Assembly: GCA_002189035.1 (NCBI GenBank)
Contig: NEEC01000017.1
Location: 682,001 to 746,000 of the forward strand
Length of the DNA: 64,000 bases
Direction of reading: 5' to 3'
From: Utricularia gibba
Lineage: Eukaryota > Plantae > Magnoliophyta
The notes under the pieces were generated by a model. That model was given only the letters and a program-made list of their open reading frames with translations. It was not told where the DNA came from and searched no databases. A program made the position numbers and the translations under genes. Within the stretch, counting starts at the first letter, position 1. Each line of letters opens with the position of its first letter. Below, one piece after another: positions 16,521 through 62,100 of this stretch.

Positions 16521-19461
16521 CTACAACGAAGTCCGTTTCTCAATTGCATATTTCATTTTGCTGATGAAGTCATCGACAGGCATTGTTCCCAGTTCTCCGG
16601 TGAGCCTGGACCGGACCGTCACCGTTTTGGCTTCCACCTCCTTCGGCCCCACGACAGCCATCAGCGGAATCTTGAGCTTCTCCGAGTTCCTAATCAGCTT
16701 CGCCAGCCGCTCGCCACTGCAAACTTCAGCCCGGATGCCTATTGCTTTCAGCTGGCTGCAGACCTGGTAGCAGTACTCCAGCTGGTGGAAGCCGAGATCA
16801 TTAGGATTTGTACTAAAAGGGCATTTATGTTTCTCAACGAAGAAAGAGCTCATGTTACCTCGGAATCAGTTACTGGCAAAAGTCGAGTTTGAATTGGGGA
16901 GAGCCACAGCGGAAAATCACCAGCATAATGCTCTATGAGAACACCAAAAAACCGCTCCAGGGAACCAAGAACTGCCCGGTGAATCATTATAGGCTGCTTT
17001 TTCTCTTGATTGGAGTCGACATAAGAGATGTCGAAGCGCCGAGGCAAGTTGAAGTCCACCTGTTTGAAAGAAGTTCCCTTTAGTTGCAGTACAGAAGCTA
17101 GCAAGAAGAAGCTAACTAGTTACAGTGAGGATCAGATGCCTGTCACCTGTATGGTTGAGCACTGCCATTTTCTTCCGAGTGCGTCTTCTATTTTAAGGTC
17201 AATTTTGGGACCATAAAAGGCACCCCCACCGTCATCGATCTGATAACTCCAACCTTTGTCGTTTAAAGCATCTTTCAGTGCAGTTGTTGCCTTCTCCCAG
17301 ATATCATCATCCCCAACAGATTTCTCTGGTCTAGTTGAGAGGTTCACTTCATATTTGTTGAAGCCGAACAGCAGCAATATTTCCTCAGTAAGATCAAGGA
17401 CACCCCGGATTTCGTCTCTAATTTGATTGTCTAAACAGAATATGTGGGCATCATCCTGTAAAGCTACCATAGAACACATTGAGTCAAGTGGATTGATTGA
17501 CAGATGAAGAAAAGCACCACAAGTGAGGATCTGATTAGCACAAGAATGTTTTCAAATTATGGTACAGGGGGGTAAAAGGTGATCATGCCCAAGTTTTCTC
17601 AAATGGTTTGCTCAAGGAATGCGGAGAAAGACAAAAGCATACCTGTGTAAATCCCCTTACTCGAAAGAGGCCATGCAAGCTCCCTGACAATTCATATCTG
17701 TACACTGTGCCAAGCTCCGCAACCCTTATTGGGAGGTCTCTGTACGAGTGAAGTTTGTTTTTGTAGACTAATATGTGGTAAGGACAATTCATAGGCCGAA
17801 GTTGATACAGTTCCTCCTCTACACCCATCTGATCAAACATGTTCTCCTTATAAAAATCAAGATGGCCACTAATCTTCCAAAGATCTGCCTTGGCTACATG
17901 AGGAGTATACAGCAGATCATATCCACGCTGAATGTGAATCTTTTTCCAAGCATCTTCGATTATGTGCCGTATCATAGCACCTTTGGGGTGCCAGAAAACC
18001 AAACCTCCGCCTGCATCATCCTGCATAAACTTGTCTAATATCAGCATTCAACTTCTGGTAGTCCGAGGAGAGATTCAAATGTACATCAGCAGGACAGTAG
18101 ACTCAAGATAGCTGAGAACCATCATCCGGATACCTGGATAGAAAACAAATCAAGGTCAAGGCCAATTCGACGGTGGTCACGCCTTTTAGCCTCCTCCTTG
18201 AGTTGAAGATACAGTTTTAGTTGTTCTTCATTTTCCCATGCAGTGCCATATATCCTCTGCAACATGGGCTTATTTGTATCTCCTCTCCAATAGGCCCCAG
18301 CAACAGACTCAAGCTCAAATGCTTTTGTACTAATACTCCCAGTAGTTTCAACATGAGGCCCAGCACAAAGATCCCACCATTCATTCCCTGTGCATCATTA
18401 TGGACTAAAGACTTTATAAAACTTGGAAGGAGATACAAATGCATGGCCTTGGTCCAGATACAAGACTCACAAGAAAATATTATCATCCTTCTGGAAACAT
18501 GTAAAAAGAATAGCAGAACATCCATCACCCTGTAGTCATATTAAAAGGAAGGAAAGGAATCACCTATGTGATATATGGTTATAGGCTCCTGTTTGATGCT
18601 CTCCAATATGTCCATCTTGTATGGCTCATTGATGGCCATTATCCGTCTTCCAGCCTCCTCCCTACTCACTTCTTCTCGAATCAGAGGAAAATTTTTACGA
18701 ATAATGCTATCCTGCATACCCACCAAGACATAATTCATCAAACCAGAACCACAGCCTGACTTTATTCACTTCTACACTATCATTGCCAGGAAATTGAGGA
18801 AAGCGAATAGTGGCCTAAACATGGGGGTACAAGAAGACAGTAATTACCATCTCTTTCTTGATTTTCTTAAGGTCCTGATCCGTCAGGGGCTCCATATCAA
18901 AATCATAATAAAAACCATGTTCGATCCACGGTCCAATTGTCACTTTAGCATTCGGATATATCTTCTGGACAGCCATCGCCATGACATGAGCACACTGCAT
19001 TCACCAACAATTTACTGATGATTACTTGTAACTTACAAACGAGAATGCATAAGGAGACCCACATCCCATGCAGCAACCATCATGCCATTCCCATTTCCAG
19101 ATTCTAGTGGGAACTAAACGAGGAAGAGGTCTTGAAAGTAGCAAAGGAATGGAAGACCCGAAAATACGATAGAAAAACCACTAACGGTGTGTCGAATTCT
19201 GAGTAGCCTCTCCGATGACTGATTAGTAGGGAGGACAATTTGACCCTCCACGGCAGTGGGGACCGTAACGTCGGTGGCAACGGCGGAGAATCTAGCCTTC
19301 CGAAGTATCATCTTATCCGCAGCGTGGAAGGTTGTAGGCTTCGGGGCATAAGAAAAAGAGTGGCAGAGGGGATTTACGCCACGGAGATAAGCAACGGGTG
19401 AAAGACGGTTGCAGAGGAGGAAGGCGGCGGAGCGTGGTACGGATCCCGCCGCCATTGCCAT
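16521..19461 (-). CDS. thrS: Threonyl-tRNA synthetase, chloroplastic/mitochondrial (EMB2761-like)
   Basis: Transit peptide, then [98 protein letters not shown] and the anticodon-binding domain. All introns GT-AG and in frame. Confidence 0.96.
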
Positions 19462-19805
19462 TGCACTCTGCGCGTGTGTGAGTGGATGATAAATGATACC
19501 CCTTGCTGCCCAGTATGTGGTGATAACCGAGCCTCCCATTGACTGACTACTTTTGTGGGCGAGCGCAAAGCTCAATTTTTAGGCGAGACCCCAACCCCAT
19601 TCAACTCGATTCTGCACCGGATTCGAATTGGGATTCGATCTAAACACGACTTCAACAGAGGACTCGAGATACCCAGTAAACAAAATCTCGACTTGAACCC
19701 ACATCCCATTTCAGACAATTATAAGCAGTGTCAGATAGTTTACATAATGCATTCATGTGTCTCTGTGCAGCAGCGGCCATAAGCTTATCCAATCATGATC
19801 ACTCC

Positions 19806-21684
19806 TCAAGCAAGCCCCTTGAAGCGGGCGTACGAAAATATGGCCAAAAAGATGAGGATCCCCACAAACACTGTCAAAAGAATAACCTGCAGAAAATGAA
19901 TCCGTAACTCATGACCCAATCAATCGCTTACGCAGTAGCAATGTTTTTAGTGTTGGTAATCACTAACCCATTTGAAGACATATGCATGACCCGCGTTCCA
20001 CGTATATGGGATGCTCACTCCAAATATTCCCGCCACCAAGGCGTAAAAAGAAAGACTCAGGCTTCCAGCGGTGAGGAAGAGCTCCAACTGCAAGACGAGA
20101 AGGGTTATGGAAGCCTAAGGTTTCGGAAGGAAAGGAACATGTGGGGTTCAAGATCCGGACCCGAATCAGCTGGTTCCGACGGCTTTCATGCTGTAGATTG
20201 AGAAAAACTAAAATTCACATCTACGTTTCCCGTTAAACTCCGGTGAAAGAGCCGGCAATGGTTACCTGAATATTTATGTATCCTTCTGTGCTATCAATGT
20301 ATTCCCGTAGCTGCCAATGTTGCAGTGCGTGATCCATTCATCAAAGAGTTTCTTAAAGGTTGCAATGGTATGGTGAACGAGTTGGGTACCTTAGCTAATC
20401 TGTTCAGCGTCCCGTCCATGTGCATGAAGCAAGCCTGCAGTGCAGAAGCAAGATGATTTTCAAATCCCTGTAACGATGAACACTCCTAAATGTTTGGTAC
20501 CTCGAACAGCATTTCGAGTTGTTCGACATCATTCGGGTGCACTTGAACTGTGGCAATACTGGCAATGCTGCTGCCATCCATGGACGTCTCCAGGTCAGAA
20601 AGTGGACGGATTGGATCCCTTGAGGTGTTTTTCGATAGATGAAGATCTTCCATATGATTGTCGCCATCCAACAGATGCTCTAGCTCGTCTCGCAGCTAAA
20701 TGAATGCAAGAAGGGAACTGCTCCATGTACTGAAATGAGTAGTTTAGTCACAAAAAAGGTGGGATGCCGCTACCTTTTGCACACGAGTTGTCAGTCTAGT
20801 CATTTGGCTCTTTAGCTTCCGCACACGATCTAAGTTGCCGCTGGAGACCTTCAAAACCCAGCAGCATGTTGCAGTCCGGAGACTAAAGGTCAGGAATTCA
20901 GATAAATTCTTGTGCTCAAAATTTCAACTCGCCTTGGATGTGAGCATGTCTAGGGCCGGGTAGATGGCGGCCTCCAAGTCCGTCGTGCGGGTGGAAAGGT
21001 AACTGCAAATGGACTCCAAAGCAGCCTCCAGCGCCAGTAGCTCAAATGGAGAACCTGCTATAGTTCAGGGCCATATGACAGAAGCTAATATCGTTGTGGT
21101 TCATGATAAGAAAATAAGAAACACCTTCGCCATTTTCTTTGTTTGGCTGCTGCTGCTGCTGCATCTGGATATTCTGCTCCCGCTCTGCATTCAGAGGCCT
21201 TATGCGCCTCCGCAGATCCTTCACCACCGGCTCAACATCCTCATCCATTGGATCACGTAGAAATATCTGCATTTTGCAGGCATATGGCAGCAACTGAATA
21301 TGTGTTTTCTGATGGCATGTTGAGAGGAGGCTGAGGCATACCTCTCTGGATGTGATGATCGCCTTGATATGCTGTCAACATTCCATCCAACCCATAAAAA
21401 CAGAAGCAGTAGAAATGCTTGATAACAACAGGGTGCACTCAGGACATTTACTTCACCTCAAGGTTGACGACAATTGCTCTCTTCCGCCTGAGGATGGCCG
21501 AGGGATACGACAACTGCGGATCGAGAACCCGAAGATCCCTCGCATGTATCTGCAGCCGTTGCATCATTGCGTATTTATCGACGTCGAGAAAAGCTTCTTG
21601 GCCGGAAGAGTCCATCAGAATCCAAGTCCGCGAGCCAGCTGCAGCACCTATCTTCATCCCAGAACCATCCTCTGGATCATCCAT
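19806..21684 (-). CDS. CorA/MRS2/MGT-family cation transporter, MRS2-2/-7/-8-type exon structure, with non-canonical GVS in place of GMN
   Basis: About 11 exons in frame: [79 protein letters not shown], and TM2 ending YARFKGLA*. Confidence 0.92.
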
Positions 21685-22440
21685 TGGCGGTGCAGTGCAG
21701 TGCTTGCCCCTCCCTAAAGCTTCATCTTTGATCAGATAGCCCAAAAGGGCCAACAATTTAGAGACGCTAATGAAGCCTCTACCGCATCACAATCACAGGC
21801 GTGTCAACGCATTCCGACATCACAACACACGCACACTGCCATTGCATGGTAATAGAAAAGTTTGTAACAGTTAATGAGGGTGGTGTCATATTTTAGACGT
21901 CTAAAGGCAACTACGTTGACTTCTGCAACAACTCTTTCAGCATGCATTCGAGTGAGGTTACACCACAGTCTCACAGAATGTGGATTGTGGGGGTGCAAGT
22001 GGAAAAGCTCGAGCTAATGGGAGGAGAAAGCGGGCCTCAATCCTCACACAACAATACAGTTCGAAGACTGGGATATCAATGCATGGGTTTGGGAGGGGAT
22101 GATCAATCCAAACACAATTGTTTTTCCAAAATTCGAACTCATGGATTTTAGGTTTTCTGTCATTTAATGCCTTTTTATTCAACCCTGTTGCATTTTTTTT
22201 TTTCCAGAACTGGCACTGGTTGGTATCTAGTATGGGGAGCGGAAATCGTAGTACCATGGATGAAAGGTGATGACATGTATAAAAGTGTGAAGCATCTGGG
22301 GCTTTTACATCCAACCGGTTAAATACCATCCTACAAGAAACTGCAGTTGTGCTGGTTTCATGGTAATGAAAATCTTCCTACAGTCAAGCATCCTGAACTG
22401 TAAAGCAACTCAAACTGGACGGTAGCAAAGGGAGCTTTAC

Positions 22441-24681
22441 TCACATGCCCCAAATGCCACGGGCTGATGCTACTCTAGAATTCGGACGAGTGCTGAGTTC
22501 AAAGAGTATCCGAGCAAATGTGTCCGCGTACCTGGGGTCCATGAAAAGCATTTCTGCAAACGCATTCTCATATGCCAGCAGGAGGGGCTTGTTCTGTGGC
22601 TCCAAAACAAGGTTCTCTAAGATCAAGGCAGCTTTCCTGCAGATTTCTGGTACTGGATGTGGCATTTTAATAACCTTCAGCAACCTATCAATTGCCCTGG
22701 GTTTACAGTGCCACAAACCCATGTGAATGCAAACATCATATGGCAATGATTTAAAGGAATGCATTTGTGTGGAATCCCTACCATCTCTCACTCGCTAGTT
22801 TTAACCGGCAGTCCATGTTAACTTCGACCAGGTTGTAAAGTGCACCAATCGCTGCTGCTTGGGCATCAGCAGCAGGGAAGCTCATAATATCAACCAATCT
22901 CCTGTATATCTGTGACTTGACAAAGATTAATTGTTTTGCCAAGATGCTAAAAGATCAACAGCCGCTGAAAGAAATTTGTAGGTTTTGAAACTGAGGATAC
23001 GGAGAAAAAAAAAAAAAAAAACTGACCCTTGTTGCAAATGGGAGGAGAAAGGGCTCATTATCAGGGTTTAGTGCCAGGCGACCGATTAGTTCAGCAGCAG
23101 CACAGTGCCACCCTCGTACACCAGAACCAAGAATTTCCACCATGGCCTCAACGGCTCGTTTGTCACTGGAGAGGTGAACATGACAAACAATCAGAGATCA
23201 AAAGAACGAAGAAATATTTTTGAGCAGAAAATTGCAGTAGCATTACGTCATTTTGATGAAAGAAGGTTTTGATGAGGTAAATATTCGTAGGTCAATCAAC
23301 GGCCCCAAATTCATGATCGTCTCCAGGGCATTTGTAACGAGCTCTTCATCCTCTGTAAACATTCACCATTCAGAAGTTCTAGTAAGAAACGTATGGCAAC
23401 ACAGAATTACAACCACCAGACACAGCAAGTTCTCACGGTCCTTTAACTTCACCAAACAGAAGAATGTAACTCACGTTTATGCTACATAAATTTAAAAGAC
23501 TGAAAATAAATTCAAATCTTCTCACCTGTAACATAATCCTCCAGACACTGGAACATTGTTTCAATGCAATGTCGACTCTGACCCATAGCAATTTCATTCT
23601 CAGTCATAAACGAAAAGTTCCTTATGATGTTTGAAGCAGCTACCGCACACTGCTGCTTTTCCATCCTCCCTTCTTCATCCAGATTAAAAAGACCATCTTC
23701 CTCAAACCACCAAACCGAAGGATGAGGCCTACCATTACCCTTATCACCAGATACCTCATTATTTGATGGAACTGATCCAGCACTACCATTGAGTCATCAA
23801 GTATCAGGATTCAACATACACTGACCCAAATTCATCTATCAAATAAAGTTTGTATGCATTTGAAATTTAAGCAGTCGGTTTTACCCAGGATGAGCAAAGG
23901 AGTCAACAGACTTCAAAGCCTCGTACTCATTTCCAAACCCGTAACAGCAGAGTTTGTCCCCAGCAGTCGTACTCTTGGTCTCTTCATGAGTACTCTTGGG
24001 AGGGCAATATCACGCCAATCATCTATCTGCTCTATTTGGAAACACCCAGATCACGAGCAGCAAAACTCAGTACATATCATGATACACAGGAATAGGTGCT
24101 TACGACTTGGAGCAGAGCATCAAGTAAGCATGGTATCTTGGCAAGAGGAATCGCATCTCTACGCATGTCATCTTTCTCCTTGAAGGAAAGCAATGTAAGA
24201 GCATTTAACGCCCATGTCAATTCACTCTTCAGCCCACTCTGAAGAGCCATAACTATCCGTTTATTATTTTGATCTGGCAATATGACAGCAGACGAAGTAT
24301 GCAATTATAGCCCACACAAAGATGAAAATTACGAGCAAAAAAAGACTAATTTTCTCCCAATATGCGATTAAGGGCAAATGCAAATAGAAACCATTACAAT
24401 TTGCACTTGCATATGATCCCCTGCAGGTGGAAAAATCCACAATCTTTACTCCATGGGCATCACGAAACAATTACCTGCGAACGCGGAGTGAACCTGCAGA
24501 GACGGGCCCAGCAGAGAGAATGGGGCGGCGGAATCGCCCAGCGCAAAATTTGCCGCAGACGCAACTGCTATAGCGGAGCTCCCAGCGCTATTGTTACCGC
24601 TGCCTACCGGACGCCCCCTCTTGGCCGCCGGAGGGCCGAGCCCCCGCCGATTCCTCCTGGCCTGCTTTGTTTCTGCATCAT
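22441..24681 (-). CDS. LFR: Armadillo-repeat protein LFR (LEAF AND FLOWER RELATED, SWI/SNF subunit); two apparent 1-nt frameshifts
   Basis: AKRGRP, NNKRIVMALQSGLKSELTWALN, IDDWRDIALP, WWFEEDGLFNLDEEGR, EDEELVTNALET, and C-terminus FARILFELSTRPNSRVASARGIWGM*. Confidence 0.93.
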
Positions 24682-27600
24682 CGGTCTTCTCACGTCAGTC
24701 CAAAGCAAGAAAGATGACGAAAAAAAAAAGAAATAAATAGAGCGGAAGAAACTGGGCCACGCCCCCCTTTTCTCACGTCCATCCATATCTTCTCGGCCCG
24801 GTTTTTAATTGGGCCCCCGACAAGGCATGTCTTGAAGCCCAGATTTCATTATTAAAAGACTAGAGATGGGCACGTGCCCAGCCCGAGAGTGCCAAGAAAC
24901 TTAAGTCAAGCAGAAGCTGGAGTTTTTTCTGAAATATTCCTATAATAAGGATTGGATTAAAGAAAGTAAGGCTGTAATGTTTTGAAAGTAAGCAAACGGG
25001 TGTAATGATTGTTATTCAGCATATATAAAATAACTACAAGGAAGCTTTTTTTATAGTTCATGATTACTTAGACCTAAAAGTGTGGAAATAAGACATGTCT
25101 CAATCCCTTTTTCTCAACTATTAAATTGACTATACTATATGCGGGTTTATGTGGTATCAATTATAAAATTACTTTAATCGTTATGTATAGACAAGTTTGT
25201 CATTTTTATTTTTTCTATACTTATCACCCTATTCTATTGATTGTCTCTTTTACTAAGGATAGTATATGTAAATATCATGTCAAATAATGAGGATCAATTT
25301 TAATCATTAATCATTGAGCAATGAACCCACAACATCAAACTATGAACCATTACTACTCATAACTTTGGGAGAAAAATCAAATGGATTTTTACTTTCAATT
25401 TTTACATGGGTTGCATGAAAGATAATCTTGTAGACAAATTTGTTGAATTAGTTGATATATGCACATGACAAAGGACAATAAATATTAACATCAAGCAGCC
25501 ATAATAACTGTAGATTTCATGTATTTTATAAACTCTAAAGAATATATAAATAACATAAATGTAAGTTCAATGAAAAATGTTTATTTAAAATAAGATAATT
25601 TATAATATATTTATATTTTTAATAAAATAATATCTCACTATATATGTATAAATATATTTTTTGAAAATAAAAAATTTTAGTTCTTCAATGGAACAACAAT
25701 TTTTTCAATCTTCAATTTGCTTACTTTTTCATGATATGATGAATATAGAAATGGATTGAGATGAAGCAATTTTCTTGCTTCTAATTATGATAGCAATTCT
25801 CATGTAAATTTTAAATGAGAGTTTTGAAGTCTTATTATGTAGCAAAAATTTTCATTTACTATCTAAAAAATTACAAAAAATGTAGCAATTACTCAAGAAC
25901 ATATCAAAAAATTATTAAGCTTATTCAAATTTCAAGTTTAGACACATTTGACATATTTTGAGTTTTACAATCACTTGAAAAAAATTTTCGTAATTGGAAG
26001 CATAATGCTGGTACTCACTACAAAGAACAAGATGAGATTGATGGATAGTCTAATGAAACTAAAACAAGTTAATGATTTTGAGTACATCTTTAAACATTTC
26101 TAGAAATATTGATATGGTTATCTAGAAACGTTTATTAACTTTACGGAAATCCTTAATTTAGTGAGAGTTAGATGTGTGGAAATGGAAAGGTGGAAGTCTC
26201 ATTTCTACAAGCAAACGAGGCTAAAAAAGCCTACGAAAATTTTAGCATCTCACTACTACTTCTTCAGTTTCCTTTCACGGCTCATCTCCAAACTTCTTCA
26301 AGTTGTGTTTTATTTCATTTCCATGCATTTTCCATTCTCCTTGCTTCTTGGTTTCTCTAGTTCCATTTTTTACTATTTAAAACATAGGTTTTCGTTCTTT
26401 CTCTACTATGTGAATTGTTTTGGTTTTTCTTTTTTGTTGTCGTGCTCTTCCATATTCTGCGTGAATTTTGTTCTCTGATCAAACTAACTTCTTTGCATTA
26501 CATTATTATGTATATCTATAATTCTAATATACTTGATAGTTGGATTCTTATTTATCATTTGATGCACTTTATTCTTATTATGTTATATATATTTATGATT
26601 TTTTAGTTAGATTTTTTTGTTATAGAATAATCACTAGAGTATTACAATTTCTAATACATGAAACTTCATTTTGGATGTATACATTAAGATAAATTGATCC
26701 TTGTTTTAATTTGAATAAATGTTAGTAAGAATCTAAATATATAAAAATTTACAAAAAAATAATTTTTGGAAAAAAAATTATGAATTACTAATATGAAGCT
26801 CCACATGTCATTTTACAAAACATGTATACAATAAGTAACTTGGAGGAGAATTTAATGAGTATTCTACTATACCTTCACAATTTTCTCTAAGTATTGAAAA
26901 AGAAAAGGTATATATATAGCACAAAAGACAGTGAAGTATAAACAATAAAAGAAATAATTGATAAATTTTATTAGTGTCATCAATGATGAATCATTTGGAT
27001 AATACAAAGATATTATCAACAATTTACATCATGAGTTTCAAAAAAAAAAAATTGATGTGAATATATAATCAATTATATTTCATAGATCATTGTTTAAAAA
27101 TATTTCAAAATAATTTAAATAAGATGAGCCTCGAATAAAAAAAATATAAAATGACATTTTATAGTATTACAAAGATTAAGAGTTTACTTATATCTCATGG
27201 CACTTCGAAAGATAAAAAAAAGATATTACATGTGTCAATCTCTCCGATTTGAATGACTGATTAGACTTTGAAGTATATATTGATAATTTTTTAAACTTGG
27301 AATAATCTATCTATTTTGAATTTGGTGTATGATTAAACTTTATTCATATTTGAATCAATTAAGTTGGTTGCTTATTGGAATAGATCATTAAAAGTGATGG
27401 ACAATAAACTAAGGAGAAGATGAATGAAATGAATAGGCACTAAAGTCGAAATATGTTGCTTGTGGGATTGTAGAAATAGACAAAGAGATAATAAAACCAA
27501 GAGAATAGTCAAATTGAATGATAGTAACAAGTAAATGATAGGAGATGAATGTTGAAATTAAAGAAAACAACAAGAAATATGTTGTTTGATAAAATAGATT

Positions 27601-28559
27601 AAATAAAGGAATGACAATAGACAAATAAAATTTAATAATTAATGATAGTAACAAGTGATAGTTGTTCATCTTCACATTCATTTTCTTTCACACCATTGAA
27701 ATTGATATTTAAGATGTTATTGATACTTAATTAAAATTGAATTTCGAGGTTTTCCTTAATGAACTTCCTTCGTCCTTTTTTTTTCCTTGCCAAAGCTTAA
27801 AATATGAAGAAGATCATGGCTGTCTTTGTTTTTTTTTTTTAATAACCAGAAAGAGAAAAAAAATTAAAAGAAGAACAAATTACTCATAAAGATAAGGATT
27901 CCAAAATTCTGATACCAAATGAGCTGATCATCTAATTTAAGAAGATTAACAACCCATGAATATGAGATGATTTGATGCTAGTAAAGAAACTTATTCAAGT
28001 CTACCCTCAATAGAATAATTCACTTACAATCAGACTATGAGAAAATTGGAAATTATGAGATAAACTTTAGAAAAGAAAGGTACTGAAAAGAATTAGATAT
28101 TTCAAACTTAGGAGTTTGATAAGTAAAAAGTGCTTAAGCATTCAAAGAAGATGAAATTCCTCACAAAATAAGTTAAAGGTACTACAAGAATACATGTTTA
28201 GAGTATTTATATTCTAAAATGAGACTCTATTATTATTAAGTTCAAATTAAATAAAAAAGAAGGCTAGCAAGTTTAATAGTAATTGAACTCTAAGATATAT
28301 ACATCTTCAAGTAATTGAACTTCTGTAATGACAAGTCGTCAAGTTCAAGTTTAATTTCAATAATATTGAGTAGAATCTTCAATGTAGTTTCAAGTATCTT
28401 ACTCTTGTTTCTTTTCATTGATCCTGTTGGAATAATCTTATTATCTAAAATATTCACTTGTGCAACATCCTCATATTTCATCAAATAATTTTCATGATCT
28501 TGATGGGATTCATCATATGAGAAGCAAAAAAACCCTCAAGATAACGATGGCCACACCAA

Positions 28560-29385
28560 TGTCTAGAGTGCAACCTTGAACTAAGACATAAAATGTTGGT
28601 GACTGATTATTTTTGCAATGATACAACTTACATAAATGAACAATTTCGCATAAGATTTTGAATGATAAATCTTTATTTGAAAGAATAGTTAAGATTTTTC
28701 AAATTCATGATTCGTTTTTTTAAGAAAATGTGGATTGTACTAATTGTATAGTGTTGAGTCCTTTGTAAAAATGCATGATTGTTATACATATATAAGTTTA
28801 TAATTCATGTGCTAATAGTGTAGATAAATATATTAGAATTAGAGAAGCAACAAGTCTCCAATATATTCATCTTTTTGTCATTGTTATTCGTATTTATTTT
28901 TTAGAATAATATTTAAGAGCCTCCACAATTGAAAACTTGGAACATTTGATTGCTCGGGAAGATCTCAAGGTTTTCTAGACATGATTGCTAATTTAGAATG
29001 TTTGTAAGTATTGAAAATGAAAAAAATTGTTCAATTGAATAACATGATCAATTAAGCGTGGAGATCATCGCAAACTGTCTTTTATGTTACAAGTGATAGT
29101 CTTTGTAGATATGTGGATTTGACATGTTTTTTTTTTTAAATGCCAAGTGCGAATGATGATCTCAAAATTTTATGTCATTATCTTTTATTCAATGAGTTGT
29201 GTAATAATGCATGTATTCATGAAATTTAGTATACTTTCATAAAGATAAAAAAACATAAAGTATACTTTTGAAATATTGCAAAGTCAATTCAAAATATTAA
29301 TATCTCTTACAAAATTTTGGAATCAAAAAATTTAATAGATATTATGTTTACATGCATCATATTGCATAATATAATTATTAAAAAT
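28560..29385 (+). mobile_element. Decayed PIF/Harbinger-type transposase relic
   Basis: Conceptual translation across stops and frameshifts gives MLVTDYFCNDTTY..FRIRF*M-KSLFERIV, LSPL*KC, ANSVDKYIRI, *YLRASTIENL, RGDHRK..MWI*HVFF and IMFTCIILHNII. These match the plant Harbinger transposase motifs in order. Confidence 0.8.
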
Positions 29386-29792
29386 AAAAGACATTTAATT
29401 CCTAAAAATATTAATATAAATGAGTATAATCAATACACAATAATTCAACCCCTAAAAGTTATAGAAATATTAATGTGAATATACAAAATTATCAAGTCAA
29501 ATAGAACATTCTCAATAGCAGTATCAATTGTCACATGAACAAAAATTTGATTAAACATATTTGAACAAGTTTTAATTAATATATTGTATGATTAATGATT
29601 ATTCAACAAATTTCATATTATATTTTATATTAGAAATATTTTAATATTATAAAATTTATGTTTTAAATTATAAAGAATATTTTTGAAAATTAATAAAAAA
29701 ATTAAAAAAACTTAATAAAAAAATCAATAAAGGTAAATTACAACAATATTTTCAAAAACCATTAACGATGTTTATCTAAATAGTATCATGTT

Positions 29793-30174
29793 GATGCTCT
29801 TATGAGATCTTGGGTTCACAATTATATTTCAATGGATTTGATCAATGGCTTTAAAAATGTCTGGTCCTCATAAGATTTGGAAATCATTAGAAAAACACTA
29901 TGGTCATACCAGTCTTTTGTTGATTTGAAACTGGCAAAGGGAAATGCCTGACCCTATGTTAGGAGAAAAATCATTAGCATAATATTTCACTCAATCACAT
30001 GCTCTATTTGATGGGATGGATGCTCTTGTTAGTTCATGTTGCAAGTAATAATCTAGTGCAACAACACAATTACGATTCAATGACACATATCAGACTACAA
30101 GAAAACAGACATTTATGATGGAGCCATCCCCTATTTTTGATAAGGCTTATTCCTTATCACTGCAGGCAGAACGG
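29793..30174 (+). mobile_element. Ty1/copia gag relic
   Basis: DALMRSWVHNYIS, KIWKSLEKHYG, WQREM..LGEKSLA*YFTQ..LFDGMDAL and MMEPSPIFDKAYSLSLQAER parallel copia gag consensus blocks (SWILNSIS, IWxxLKERF, QGSMSVxxYYTKLKxLWDEL, LMDPLPxINKAYSLxxQEE). Confidence 0.72.
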
Positions 30175-59141: not shown

Positions 59142-62100
59142 GATCAGGACATGGACGAGATGTGCTGACCATATATAGCGGCTGAGAAGTAGCCAGCTAG
59201 AGCCATGGTTTGAAGTAAGGTAAAAAGCAGCATTGAAACTGACTTTAACTGTGTCTGTGACAAATGTTTTGTTTTTGCTCTGGATTCAATGCCCGTCACC
59301 TTTTCCTGTGGCATTGAATTCCTACATTTTCCACACAAAGATTCTCCATATCTTGCTCACAAACAATAGCAGGGATAGGGATGTTCTTTTCCAGTTTTGA
59401 AAGCCAAGTTTTCTCTAGGGCAAGTGACACTTCTTGAGATTGAACAACCGGACTCCCACTTTATGATCAAAGTGTGCAATCACAATGTTGCGCACGCATT
59501 TCCTTCCTCTTTGCATGATCTTAAACGACAATGTCTCTCGTAAGCTTGACCATTACAAGTCTTCGTCTGTGCGTGGGAACATACAACATCTGGTCCGGAA
59601 TTGGAGCCCGGAAACGTAGTTTTGACTTGTTAGAAGTGACACCACCCTAGCAAGTAAGTCAATCCCAGATGATATGATGCAACCCCACATCAAGATTCTC
59701 CAAATCTTGTACAAAAATTCATTTTTAATGATCAAATCTTTGGTCTTCCCGGATAACAATTAAATAATGAATCTAGCAGCAAGAGGAGCTGCGGCTGTAA
59801 CCTGCAACCGCACGCTGCTGTTTCTCCTCCATGGCCACAGCTTAGTGTACAGAGCTTCGTAGACTTCTCCCATGCAATCAATACATGAAAAAGCACCTGC
59901 CCAGTAACAGGGAGAGTTCCCCATACTGGTTTCACGAGTATCCATCCATCTGTGAATTGACTTGTTAACAGTTTCGATGTTGGGTAAATAATTTCAAGTA
60001 GTCGGGTGGCAGTAAGTAAATGCGAGTGGAGTTATGATTGCAGAAGAGGAAGGCGAGTGGCAGGTCTGCTGCTCCCACATTCGTGCTACTTCAGCCTCTG
60101 CTGTACTGTTTCATCTTTCAACTACAACAACAACAGGGTGTGATGTAAACCGGTTGCCTTGTTCCACCACTTTTGTAGACGGCTCCAGGCCGGAGCCCGG
60201 ACCCCGGCCCATCGGCAAATGGGGTCGTTGTCTTCCGGTTTACTTAACCCAGTCGGCGTATTACAAGTTGTGTTTTACCACGGCCGGCGGTCATTAAGAA
60301 GAGTTTATGAGAGGAATAATTACCTTTTGACTCTTTAAAAATGCGACCCTTTTTAATCTTGTTACCCAAGTCAGATGTCTGACGAGTTAACCGCCCTTAG
60401 AAATCAATTTTTCAATTTTTTTTTTTCTAAAACAAAATATTTTCAAAATTTTGGTTTTGGATCAAATTCAAACATTTCATAGAAATCAATGATGATATCC
60501 ATAGACAAATTTCTTTGAAGAGTTGATAGTAGGTTAAAGAGTTTGGATATTATGAATTTGGAGACATTCTAAACATTGATGTTGTGTATGCATGAGAAGA
60601 ATAGCATTATTGCTTACATTACCTTTGCCCACAATCTACCTGCACTATGATAATGAGTTAAATATCTCATTCAAACAATGGTAGAATACAATCTAAAAAA
60701 GTGGGAGGATGGGGCCACTATGTTATCTTTTTAAAAAATATTACTATAAATCTTTTTTACTTAAACGATAACAAAACCCCATTTGAATTGATCTATGTTC
60801 TGCCCTCTATGTCGAAGTTGGATATATCATCAAACTTTATTCTAGAATCACATTCTGCATACAAAGAAAACAAATCAATCCTATTCATTACATTTCAAAC
60901 ATGTTAGAAAATATTTGTTAAGATATATATATATATGTTTGAGGATTGACTATAAAGTCAAAGGTTGTATAATTCTCATACTTATTTCTACCAAATCACA
61001 ATTTATGACATTCAAATCCAAAATAATCTCTAACAAAGAATGATTTTCATGAATTTTTTAATTAATTTATAGAATTTGAGAAGGGAAAAATACGTTTTGA
61101 TGCGAACGTTTCAAAAATTGTTTATAATTAGATGCACACGTTTTTGAAAATAGTTTTGTGGTACAAACGTTTCAGTTTTTATTCAAATTCAGTATTAATA
61201 TTTCAAAATATATTATTTTAATACAAACGTTAAATATTATATCATTTTTCAAATAACAACGTTTTTTAAAATATTTTTTAAATACATACGTTGTTTAAAA
61301 AGTTAAAAAACAATACAAACGTTTTTTCATACATACTTTTTAATACATACGTTTATTGTAAACTATGATTTTGAATAAAATATATTAAAAATAATTAATA
61401 TATTACAATATATATTAAAAATTAATAGAAAAAATATAAGTTATGTGTCTTTCAAATTTTCATGTTTTCTATCTCATTAATTTTCGATTAGAATAAATTT
61501 TTAATTAAATCTTTATGTGAAATAAAATATGTATTTAACTTAACTATCAATTTAATTTACTTCATTATGTGAATTAGATTATTATATTATATTTATATTT
61601 ATAAGTTTTTCAAAATTTACAACAATATCCGAAAACTTTTTCTAATAATTCAAAAATATCTAAATAATATATTAATATTATAAGTAATATAATTGTAAAT
61701 ATGTATTCCAACATTTAATAATTTGAGTACATCATAATAAACTTAGTGCATTTTAAGTTGGTCAATCACTTTTTTATAAAATGATATATGTCATTAATTA
61801 AATATTTCTATTGATTTGGATACAATGAAAACTAAATATTAGATATTTAAACATTTTTTTCAAATCATCGAAATGTTTAAATATCATCTTATCCATCAAA
61901 GTAAACTAAACGATACCAATCAAAAGAAACAGCGATATAGTTATTGAAGTTTGGGAATCACCTGCATCAAACTAACCAGTTCATCCCTACATGCTATACG
62001 TATTCGATTTCAGGGGAATCGCCGACGTCCATCCATCATCACATTTGGAAATTCACATGTTGCAGCGAATTGTAACACATCATAACTCGTATACCAACTT

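Follow-up and report, generated by a model that had tools for sequence, protein, structure and literature searches.

The GMN signature and its natural variants

To our knowledge, the Gly-Met-Asn (GMN) signature is among the most strictly conserved of any ion-channel family. In CorA and in human MRS2, hydrated Mg2+ is held between two rings, one made of five Asn side-chain oxygens and the other of five Gly carbonyls. The pore has two points of greatest constriction, one of them at Asn362, where Mg2+ sheds two of its waters (PMC10404273, PMC3629940). When one residue of GMN is changed, Mg2+ transport is lost; all of the single substitutions tested either abolish it or strongly reduce it (PMC4613352, PMC9948656).

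Natural variants of the signature have been described in cereals and in bacteria. The cereal proteins OsMRS2-4, OsMRS2-5, TaMGT1 and ZmMGT6 (AMN) and OsMRS2-8 (GIN) have an altered signature and show reduced or absent Mg2+ complementation. The rice AMN and GIN members do not complement, and the maize AMN protein ZmMGT6 complements weakly (PMC4613352, PMC9948656). ZntB, a bacterial Zn2+ transporter of the 2-TM-GxN class, carries GIN or GVN, combining a beta-branched hydrophobic middle residue with a changed cation preference (PMC4613352, PMC6972854). All three published natural motifs, AMN, GIN and GVN, retain the Asn, as the original prediction for this locus had stated (PMC4613352, PMC9948656). 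In Arabidopsis, the MRS2 proteins interact permissively with one another, as Schmitz 2013 is cited in PMC7854698.

The bladderwort Utricularia gibba has an MRS2 gene in which GMN is replaced by GVS. The AMN and GIN cereal variants keep the Asn and belong to old, conserved monocot lineages, whereas the U. gibba gene has lost the Asn and is a lineage-specific, fast-evolving copy. ZntB also retains the Asn and is only a distant relative, and its likeness to GVS concerns the sequence of the motif. The U. gibba gene would provide an expressed, selectively maintained natural protein without the motif Asn, which the earlier described natural variants keep. A literature search found no paper in which GVS appears alongside GMN and magnesium, and none that links Utricularia to magnesium transporters.

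Structure and expression of the gene

The window is a stretch of 64,000 nucleotides of the U. gibba genome (contig NEEC01000017.1, positions 682,001 to 746,000), and all positions given here are counted within it. This stretch was found in 15 public runs from five studies, all under one species label. Contigs of four runs (X1, X5, X7 and X10) were aligned to positions 19500-22000. X1 and X7 are DNA contigs. X5 and X10 belong to two studies. Because their contigs leave out precisely the ten introns of our gene model, both are taken to be RNA runs, with the gene transcribed and spliced as modeled. X10 represents another strain. X7 is ~96% identical to the window and differs from it at 79 letters and by 28 gaps in 2.5 kb.

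In the traced model, the gene occupies 21684-19806 on the minus strand and consists of 11 exons that form one open frame of 370 codons followed by TGA. All ten introns have usable splice sites, nine of them GT-AG and one (intron 4) GC-AG. The transcript contigs span 19562 to about 21749. An open frame with intact splice sites had been predicted from the DNA, and the contigs bear this out. The features of the gene are as follows.

21685 to 21749, minus strand: 5' untranslated region, to the limit of the transcript contigs (X5 to 21730, X10 to 21749)
21457 to 21684, minus strand: exon 1, with the ATG at 21684, 76 amino acids, N-terminal MRS2-like domain (model, PF22099 match, joint 21371/21457 in X5 and X10)
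21342 to 21371, minus strand: exon 2, a 30-base micro-exon of 10 amino acids (model, joints 21266/21342 and 21371/21457)
21125 to 21266, minus strand: exon 3, with a poly-Gln stretch (model, transcript contigs)
20933 to 21054, minus strand: exon 4, followed by the only GC-AG intron, 20849-20932 (model, transcript contigs)
20774 to 20848, minus strand: exon 5 (model, transcript contigs)
20501 to 20695, minus strand: exon 6, a variable linker ahead of the EML(L/F)E motif (model, transcript contigs)
20390 to 20434, minus strand: exon 7 (model, transcript contigs)
20266 to 20310, minus strand: exon 8 (model, transcript contigs)
20161 to 20190, minus strand: exon 9, a 30-base micro-exon (model, transcript contigs)
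19968 to 20087, minus strand: exon 10, with TM1, the GVS motif and the loop (model, contigs, hydropathy)
20013 to 20021, minus strand: GVS tripeptide replacing the GMN pore-entrance motif at the end of TM1 (sequence, codon alignment, X1 and X5 contigs)
19806 to 19886, minus strand: exon 11, with TM2, the C-terminus and the stop codon TGA at 19808-19806 (model, contigs, hydropathy)
19562 to 19805, minus strand: 3' untranslated region, to the limit of the transcript contigs (X5 contig starting at 19562)

Some details of the transcript are worth recording. Intron 4 (20849-20932, minus strand) has the donor GCGAGT and is precisely spliced in the transcript contigs from the two studies; the joint 20847/20932 in X5 and X10 skips 84 bases, and a shift of one base fits GC..AG. 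The 5' untranslated region contains an upstream open reading frame of three codons (ATG AAG CTT TAG) at 21714-21725 on the minus strand, 38 bases ahead of the main ATG. Exon 3 has a run of five Gln codons at 21140-21160 on the minus strand; its length is polymorphic, since a 3-base deletion at 21146 in the X7 lineage leaves the reading frame intact. Short contigs retain intron 5 (20668-20803, in X5 and X10) and intron 8 (20164-20295, in X10) at a depth below that of the spliced forms, so that some of the transcripts would not yield a complete protein.

The spliced 370-amino-acid model was used for local alignments, trees and codon counts, and the database searches for profiles and structures were done exon by exon. 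The Pfam family PF22099 (MRS2-like) matched exon 1 alone with an E value of 9.6e-05 and 22.1 bits, which is below the 27-bit cut-off for the whole protein, as expected for one exon. The exon-by-exon Pfam search gave no meaningful match beyond exon 1, and a Protein Data Bank search with the 40-amino-acid motif exon returned only chance matches to antibodies. Hydropathy peaks at about residues 307-332 and 336-370 align with the canonical TM1 and TM2, so the protein has the two C-terminal helices of the family. A search of the window by tblastn with a canonical protein found no second MRS2 gene.

The pore entrance

At 20036-20001, the minus strand reads GCG GGA ATA TTT GGA GTG AGC ATC CCA TAT ACG TGG. 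The motif codons are GGA (20021-20019), GTG (20018-20016) and AGC (20015-20013). The same codons had been read in the original prediction. In a codon alignment, the three canonical transcripts (L001, L003 and L004) have GG(T/C) ATG AAC at this site, which places GVS two A-to-G transitions away from GMN. These are the two substitutions that had been proposed, ATG to GTG and AAC to AGC.

Independent contigs agree with the window. The X1 DNA contig, which may be the source of the assembly itself, and the spliced, RNA-like X5 contig have no differing letter over 19964-20087, and GVS therefore stands in both DNA and RNA. Neither contig shows GMN, and the codons, whose confirmation the original prediction had called for, are borne out by these contigs. 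A sequencing or assembly artefact, or RNA editing that restores GMN, is vanishingly improbable in light of this letter-for-letter match over the motif, and was ruled out by the GTG AGC found in the DNA and RNA-like contigs. No difference at 20013-20021 is among those listed for X10 or X7. GVS is probably present in these two as well; we word this as probable because 52 further differences fall outside the list, including two of the six that X10 has in the motif exon. From the same lack of a listed difference, GVS was probably already present in the roughly 4%-diverged X7 lineage.

The GVS protein retains the Gly of the motif (GGA) at the end of TM1, as well as both transmembrane helices. The change of Met to Val is that of the natural GVN variants, and the Asn is absent, replaced by Ser (AGC) in the DNA and in the transcript contig. 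Judged by its signature, this MRS2 gene falls outside the G-x-N definition of the 2-TM-GxN class (CorA, Mrs2, Alr1, ZntB). By our offset mapping, which counts back from the Gly, TmCorA Thr305 would correspond to an Ala instead of a Ser, and the other polar pore positions (Ser, Thr and Glu) would be kept.

Origin within the Lamiales and rate of change

The best matches of the protein by local blastp are MRS2-I and MRS2-2 proteins of the Lamiales, at ~61% identity over the full length and an E value of 1e-150. These partners carry PF22099 and PF01544, which places the U. gibba protein in the plant MRS2/MGT family by descent. They are similar to Arabidopsis MGT9 and include proteins of Sesamum indicum, Salvia and Erythranthe (P0091, P0097, P0114 and P0178) from the same clade. 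They share with the U. gibba protein the MRS2-like domain order, the two C-terminal transmembrane helices and a tail of the form ...SYAR(F/Y)KGL. The 10-residue HIKAIIT... stretch that they also share forms a 30-base micro-exon of its own in the U. gibba gene.

In a careful tree made without the other long branches, the GVS protein nests in a core-Lamiales clade of 17 rows (ultrafast bootstrap 97, SH-aLRT 96). A constraint that groups it with all of the Lamiales was not rejected (p-AU 0.51). On this placement, the gene belongs to the plant MRS2-I/MRS2-2 (MGT9-like) branch, and it arose within the core Lamiales. The assignment to the MRS2/CorA family made in the original prediction is supported by the PF22099 match of exon 1, the ~61% identity and this nesting among core-Lamiales MRS2-I proteins.

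The protein has changed far more than its relatives. Its end branch in the careful tree is 2.09 against a median of 0.075, ~28 times as long. Of 245 columns conserved in at least 90% of 116 canonical proteins, it departs from the consensus at 65; the canonical proteins themselves depart at a median of 2 and at no more than 16. Against a canonical Lamiales-like transcript, dN was 0.26 and dS was saturated at ~2.5, for a ratio of ~0.1 that is rough given the saturation. Pairs of canonical transcripts had a dN of 0.11. Between species, dS was 2.5 or not computable, which leaves the rough ratio and the relative dN as the usable measures. By three-taxon arithmetic, non-synonymous change on the branch of the GVS gene has been about sixfold that on the branch of its canonical relative since their split. 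A shorter N-terminus also distinguishes the U. gibba protein from the Lamiales proteins.

Recurrence of Ser at the pore entrance

A full scan of 1.84 billion representative sequences with the 40-amino-acid motif exon gave 85 matches, 83 of which are real MRS2 proteins. Their motifs are GMN (72), GVN (5), GMS (3), GVS (1), GLS (1) and SMN (1). A word search that started from the GVS protein of Paulownia added 120 proteins, which their sources label as MRS2-I or MRS2-2. Among 125 aligned full-length proteins, GMN is found in 118, GVS in three, GMS in two, and GLS and GVN in one each. The GVS carriers are the U. gibba gene, Paulownia fortunei KAI3459454.1 and Magnolia sinica XP_058086562.1. GMS is found in Psophocarpus KAK7393752.1 and Coptis KAF9612240.1, GLS in Stylosanthes MED6119870.1 and GVN in Coffea arabica; a third GMS comes from one fragment of an unnamed sample. 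The original prediction had allowed that GVS might turn out to be common among MRS2 proteins. It is rare, at three of the 125 full-length proteins, and what stood of that concern is that it is not unique, with G-x-Ser recurring in at least five other plant lineages. GVS is a rare yet recurring natural variant of what is predicted to be the pore entrance.

All seven non-Asn cases in the subfamily have Ser: three GVS (with the U. gibba gene included), three GMS and one GLS. The six besides U. gibba are P0072, P0169, P0031, P0067, P0078 and P0074. The full-length proteins from Paulownia, Magnolia, Psophocarpus, Coptis and Stylosanthes belong to the same subfamily, share the change of Asn to Ser and sit on long branches, and two of them also have Met to Val. 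Every filter variant is long-branched in the larger tree. By our own calculation, Ser makes up ~1/5 of the single-step non-synonymous neighbors of an AAY codon when transitions are weighted twice as heavily as transversions, and at least five independent changes to Ser would therefore be unlikely under free decay. This tally of Ser is slightly biased by ascertainment, as both search queries carried Ser. The all-Ser spectrum speaks for a replacement that is tolerated and against random decay.

The Ser variants look independent of one another. The U. gibba protein is only 42-52% identical to the other full-length G-x-Ser proteins. The derived residues that it shares number 12 for Paulownia (GVS) and 10 for the legume Stylosanthes (GLS), and the word search seeded with the Paulownia protein found no Lamiales orthologue of it. 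Since the shared derived residues are no higher with Paulownia and such an orthologue was not found, the two GVS genes appear to have arisen separately. A quick tree had suggested a common origin of GVS with Paulownia, in a group that also included the GVN protein of Coffea (SH-aLRT 84). This was rejected as long-branch attraction because the canonical copies of Coffea sit elsewhere, and because of the 12 versus 10 shared residues and the lack of an orthologue in other Lamiales. Word searches with a 48-amino-acid open reading frame around the motif exon gave no candidates, and those with the exon-1 open reading frame gave one unrelated fragment at 51%; neither retrieved an orthologue from another bladderwort or from Genlisea.

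Selection on the gene

Differences between strains bear on whether the gene is maintained. The coding differences listed for X7 and X10 comprise 10 synonymous and 8 non-synonymous changes, a pN/pS of ~0.24. The neutral expectation is ~77% non-synonymous (binomial P=0.003 for the listed differences, which are a sample). In the transmembrane exons 10 and 11, the listed differences are 7 synonymous and 2 non-synonymous, and the latter are both conservative (Thr to Ser and Ala to Thr). Most of the listed replacements fall in exon 6, the variable linker. All of the indels listed for X7 within the gene are intronic, except for the 3-base deletion in the poly-Gln stretch.

The bias of the alleles toward synonymous sites, the confinement of frame-breaking indels to introns and the low dN/dS ratio speak against a pseudogene. 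The gene would have changed fast and now be constrained, as far as a sample of differences can tell.

Possible roles of the GVS protein

We give about even chances to the reading that the GVS gene encodes a transcribed, maintained and very fast-evolving MRS2-I/MRS2-2 pore subunit whose Mg2+ filter has been weakened or altered. A pore of five such subunits is predicted. Around its outer mouth, where five Asn carboxamides normally make up a ring that holds hydrated Mg2+, there would be five shorter Ser hydroxyls that offer one hydroxyl oxygen each, and the Met that packs the loop would be replaced by Val. An entrance of this kind would bind hydrated Mg2+ weakly, and the mouth may be wider, less selective for Mg2+ or poorly conducting. 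Alone or mixed with GMN paralogues, the protein could make a channel that selects less strictly for Mg2+, conducts it less well or has its cation preference shifted. We infer both the ion permeation and the assembly of the GVS protein from its sequence. The very long branch counts against a maintained subunit, as it could equally reflect a long relaxation of constraint. Against a weakened filter, the AMN protein ZmMGT6 still complements weakly, so a change of the motif is not always abolishing (PMC9948656).

The original prediction offered a channel of changed selectivity, a non-conducting or regulatory subunit, or early pseudogenisation, and the GVS protein may be either of the first two. In the second, the protein would be a modulatory subunit that does not conduct. 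Acting as a natural dominant negative, it would enter pentamers with GMN paralogues and reduce or gate the Mg2+ flux through them. This is unlikely overall, but the permissive interactions among Arabidopsis MRS2 proteins, as Schmitz 2013 is cited in PMC7854698, make a role in mixed pentamers a serious rival. It is consistent with the abolition of CorA and Mrs2 transport by changes in GMN and the failure of the rice AMN and GIN proteins to complement (PMC4613352, PMC9948656), and the frame of the helices and the cytosolic domain has been kept under selection. The 65 departures at conserved columns could, however, also damage the interfaces between subunits. The opposite reading, in which function is essentially unchanged and the Ser hydroxyl ring, the Gly carbonyl ring and the polar lining suffice for an ordinary Mg2+ channel, strikes us as rather improbable. 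The Mg2+-binding Gly is kept, as are most of the pore-lining Ser, Thr and Glu of TM1 predicted from the offset mapping; Ser is the sole natural replacement found; and AMN ZmMGT6 retains weak activity (PMC9948656). Yet every single substitution of GMN tested has abolished or strongly reduced transport (PMC4613352), GMN is exact in 118 of the 125 aligned full-length relatives, and the full-length Ser variants are all long-branched, as would be expected if the original constraint had been lost.

More doubtful still is a decaying duplicate, freed from constraint once it had been duplicated and on its way to a pseudogene, with expression and the open frame as remnants. The end branch of ~28 times the median, the 65 departures, the loss of the family signature and the retention of introns (20668-20803 and 20164-20295) in some transcripts would all fit decay. 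Decay would leave unexplained an open frame of 11 exons with ten introns precisely spliced in two studies, the synonymous bias of the listed differences (P=0.003, and 7 to 2 in the transmembrane exons), the restriction of the frame-breaking indels listed for X7 to introns, and Ser in seven of seven non-Asn cases, which is not a random spectrum. On this evidence, early pseudogenisation is disfavored. Two outcomes that the original prediction had named as refuting it, a lack of transcription and a dN/dS near 1, were not seen either: spliced, RNA-like contigs come from two studies, and the pN/pS of ~0.24 among the listed differences and the rough dN/dS of ~0.1, with dS saturated, are well below 1.

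The GVS variant would gain interest if the recurrent Ser ring proves functional. The recurrences of Ser are natural experiments on the role of the Asn ring, whether in selectivity, in dehydration or in the stability of the loop. The GVS gene also allows a test of whether subunits without the filter act as regulators in plant MRS2 pentamers. A broader proposal, which is speculative and which we consider unlikely, is that G-x-Ser is a repeatedly evolved and functional alternative pore mouth. MRS2-I/MRS2-2 duplicates of at least five angiosperm lineages (bladderwort, Paulownia, Magnolia, Coptis and legumes) would each have arrived at a Ser ring on their own, and as channels or as subunits of heteromers would differ in the cations they prefer or in their conductance. 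In U. gibba, which is rootless, aquatic and carnivorous, this might belong to a broader reorganization of mineral transport.

Neighboring genes

The MRS2 gene is flanked by two genes on the same strand. Downstream, at 17000-19659 on the minus strand, lies a gene for a class II aminoacyl-tRNA synthetase, with open reading frames resembling threonyl-tRNA synthetase and a match to the Pfam family tRNA-synt_2b. Its abundant transcript contig (X10, depth 129) extends to 19659. The 5' end of the synthetase gene therefore lies within the 3' untranslated region of the MRS2 gene (19562-19805), a very tight packing. Upstream, at 22440-23700 on the minus strand, is a multi-exon gene with open reading frames that resemble armadillo- or HEAT-type repeats; the one open reading frame scanned had no Pfam match. 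Elsewhere in the window, the stretches at 26001-30000 and 60001-62000 have 25-28% G+C and lie between genes of 42-48% G+C.
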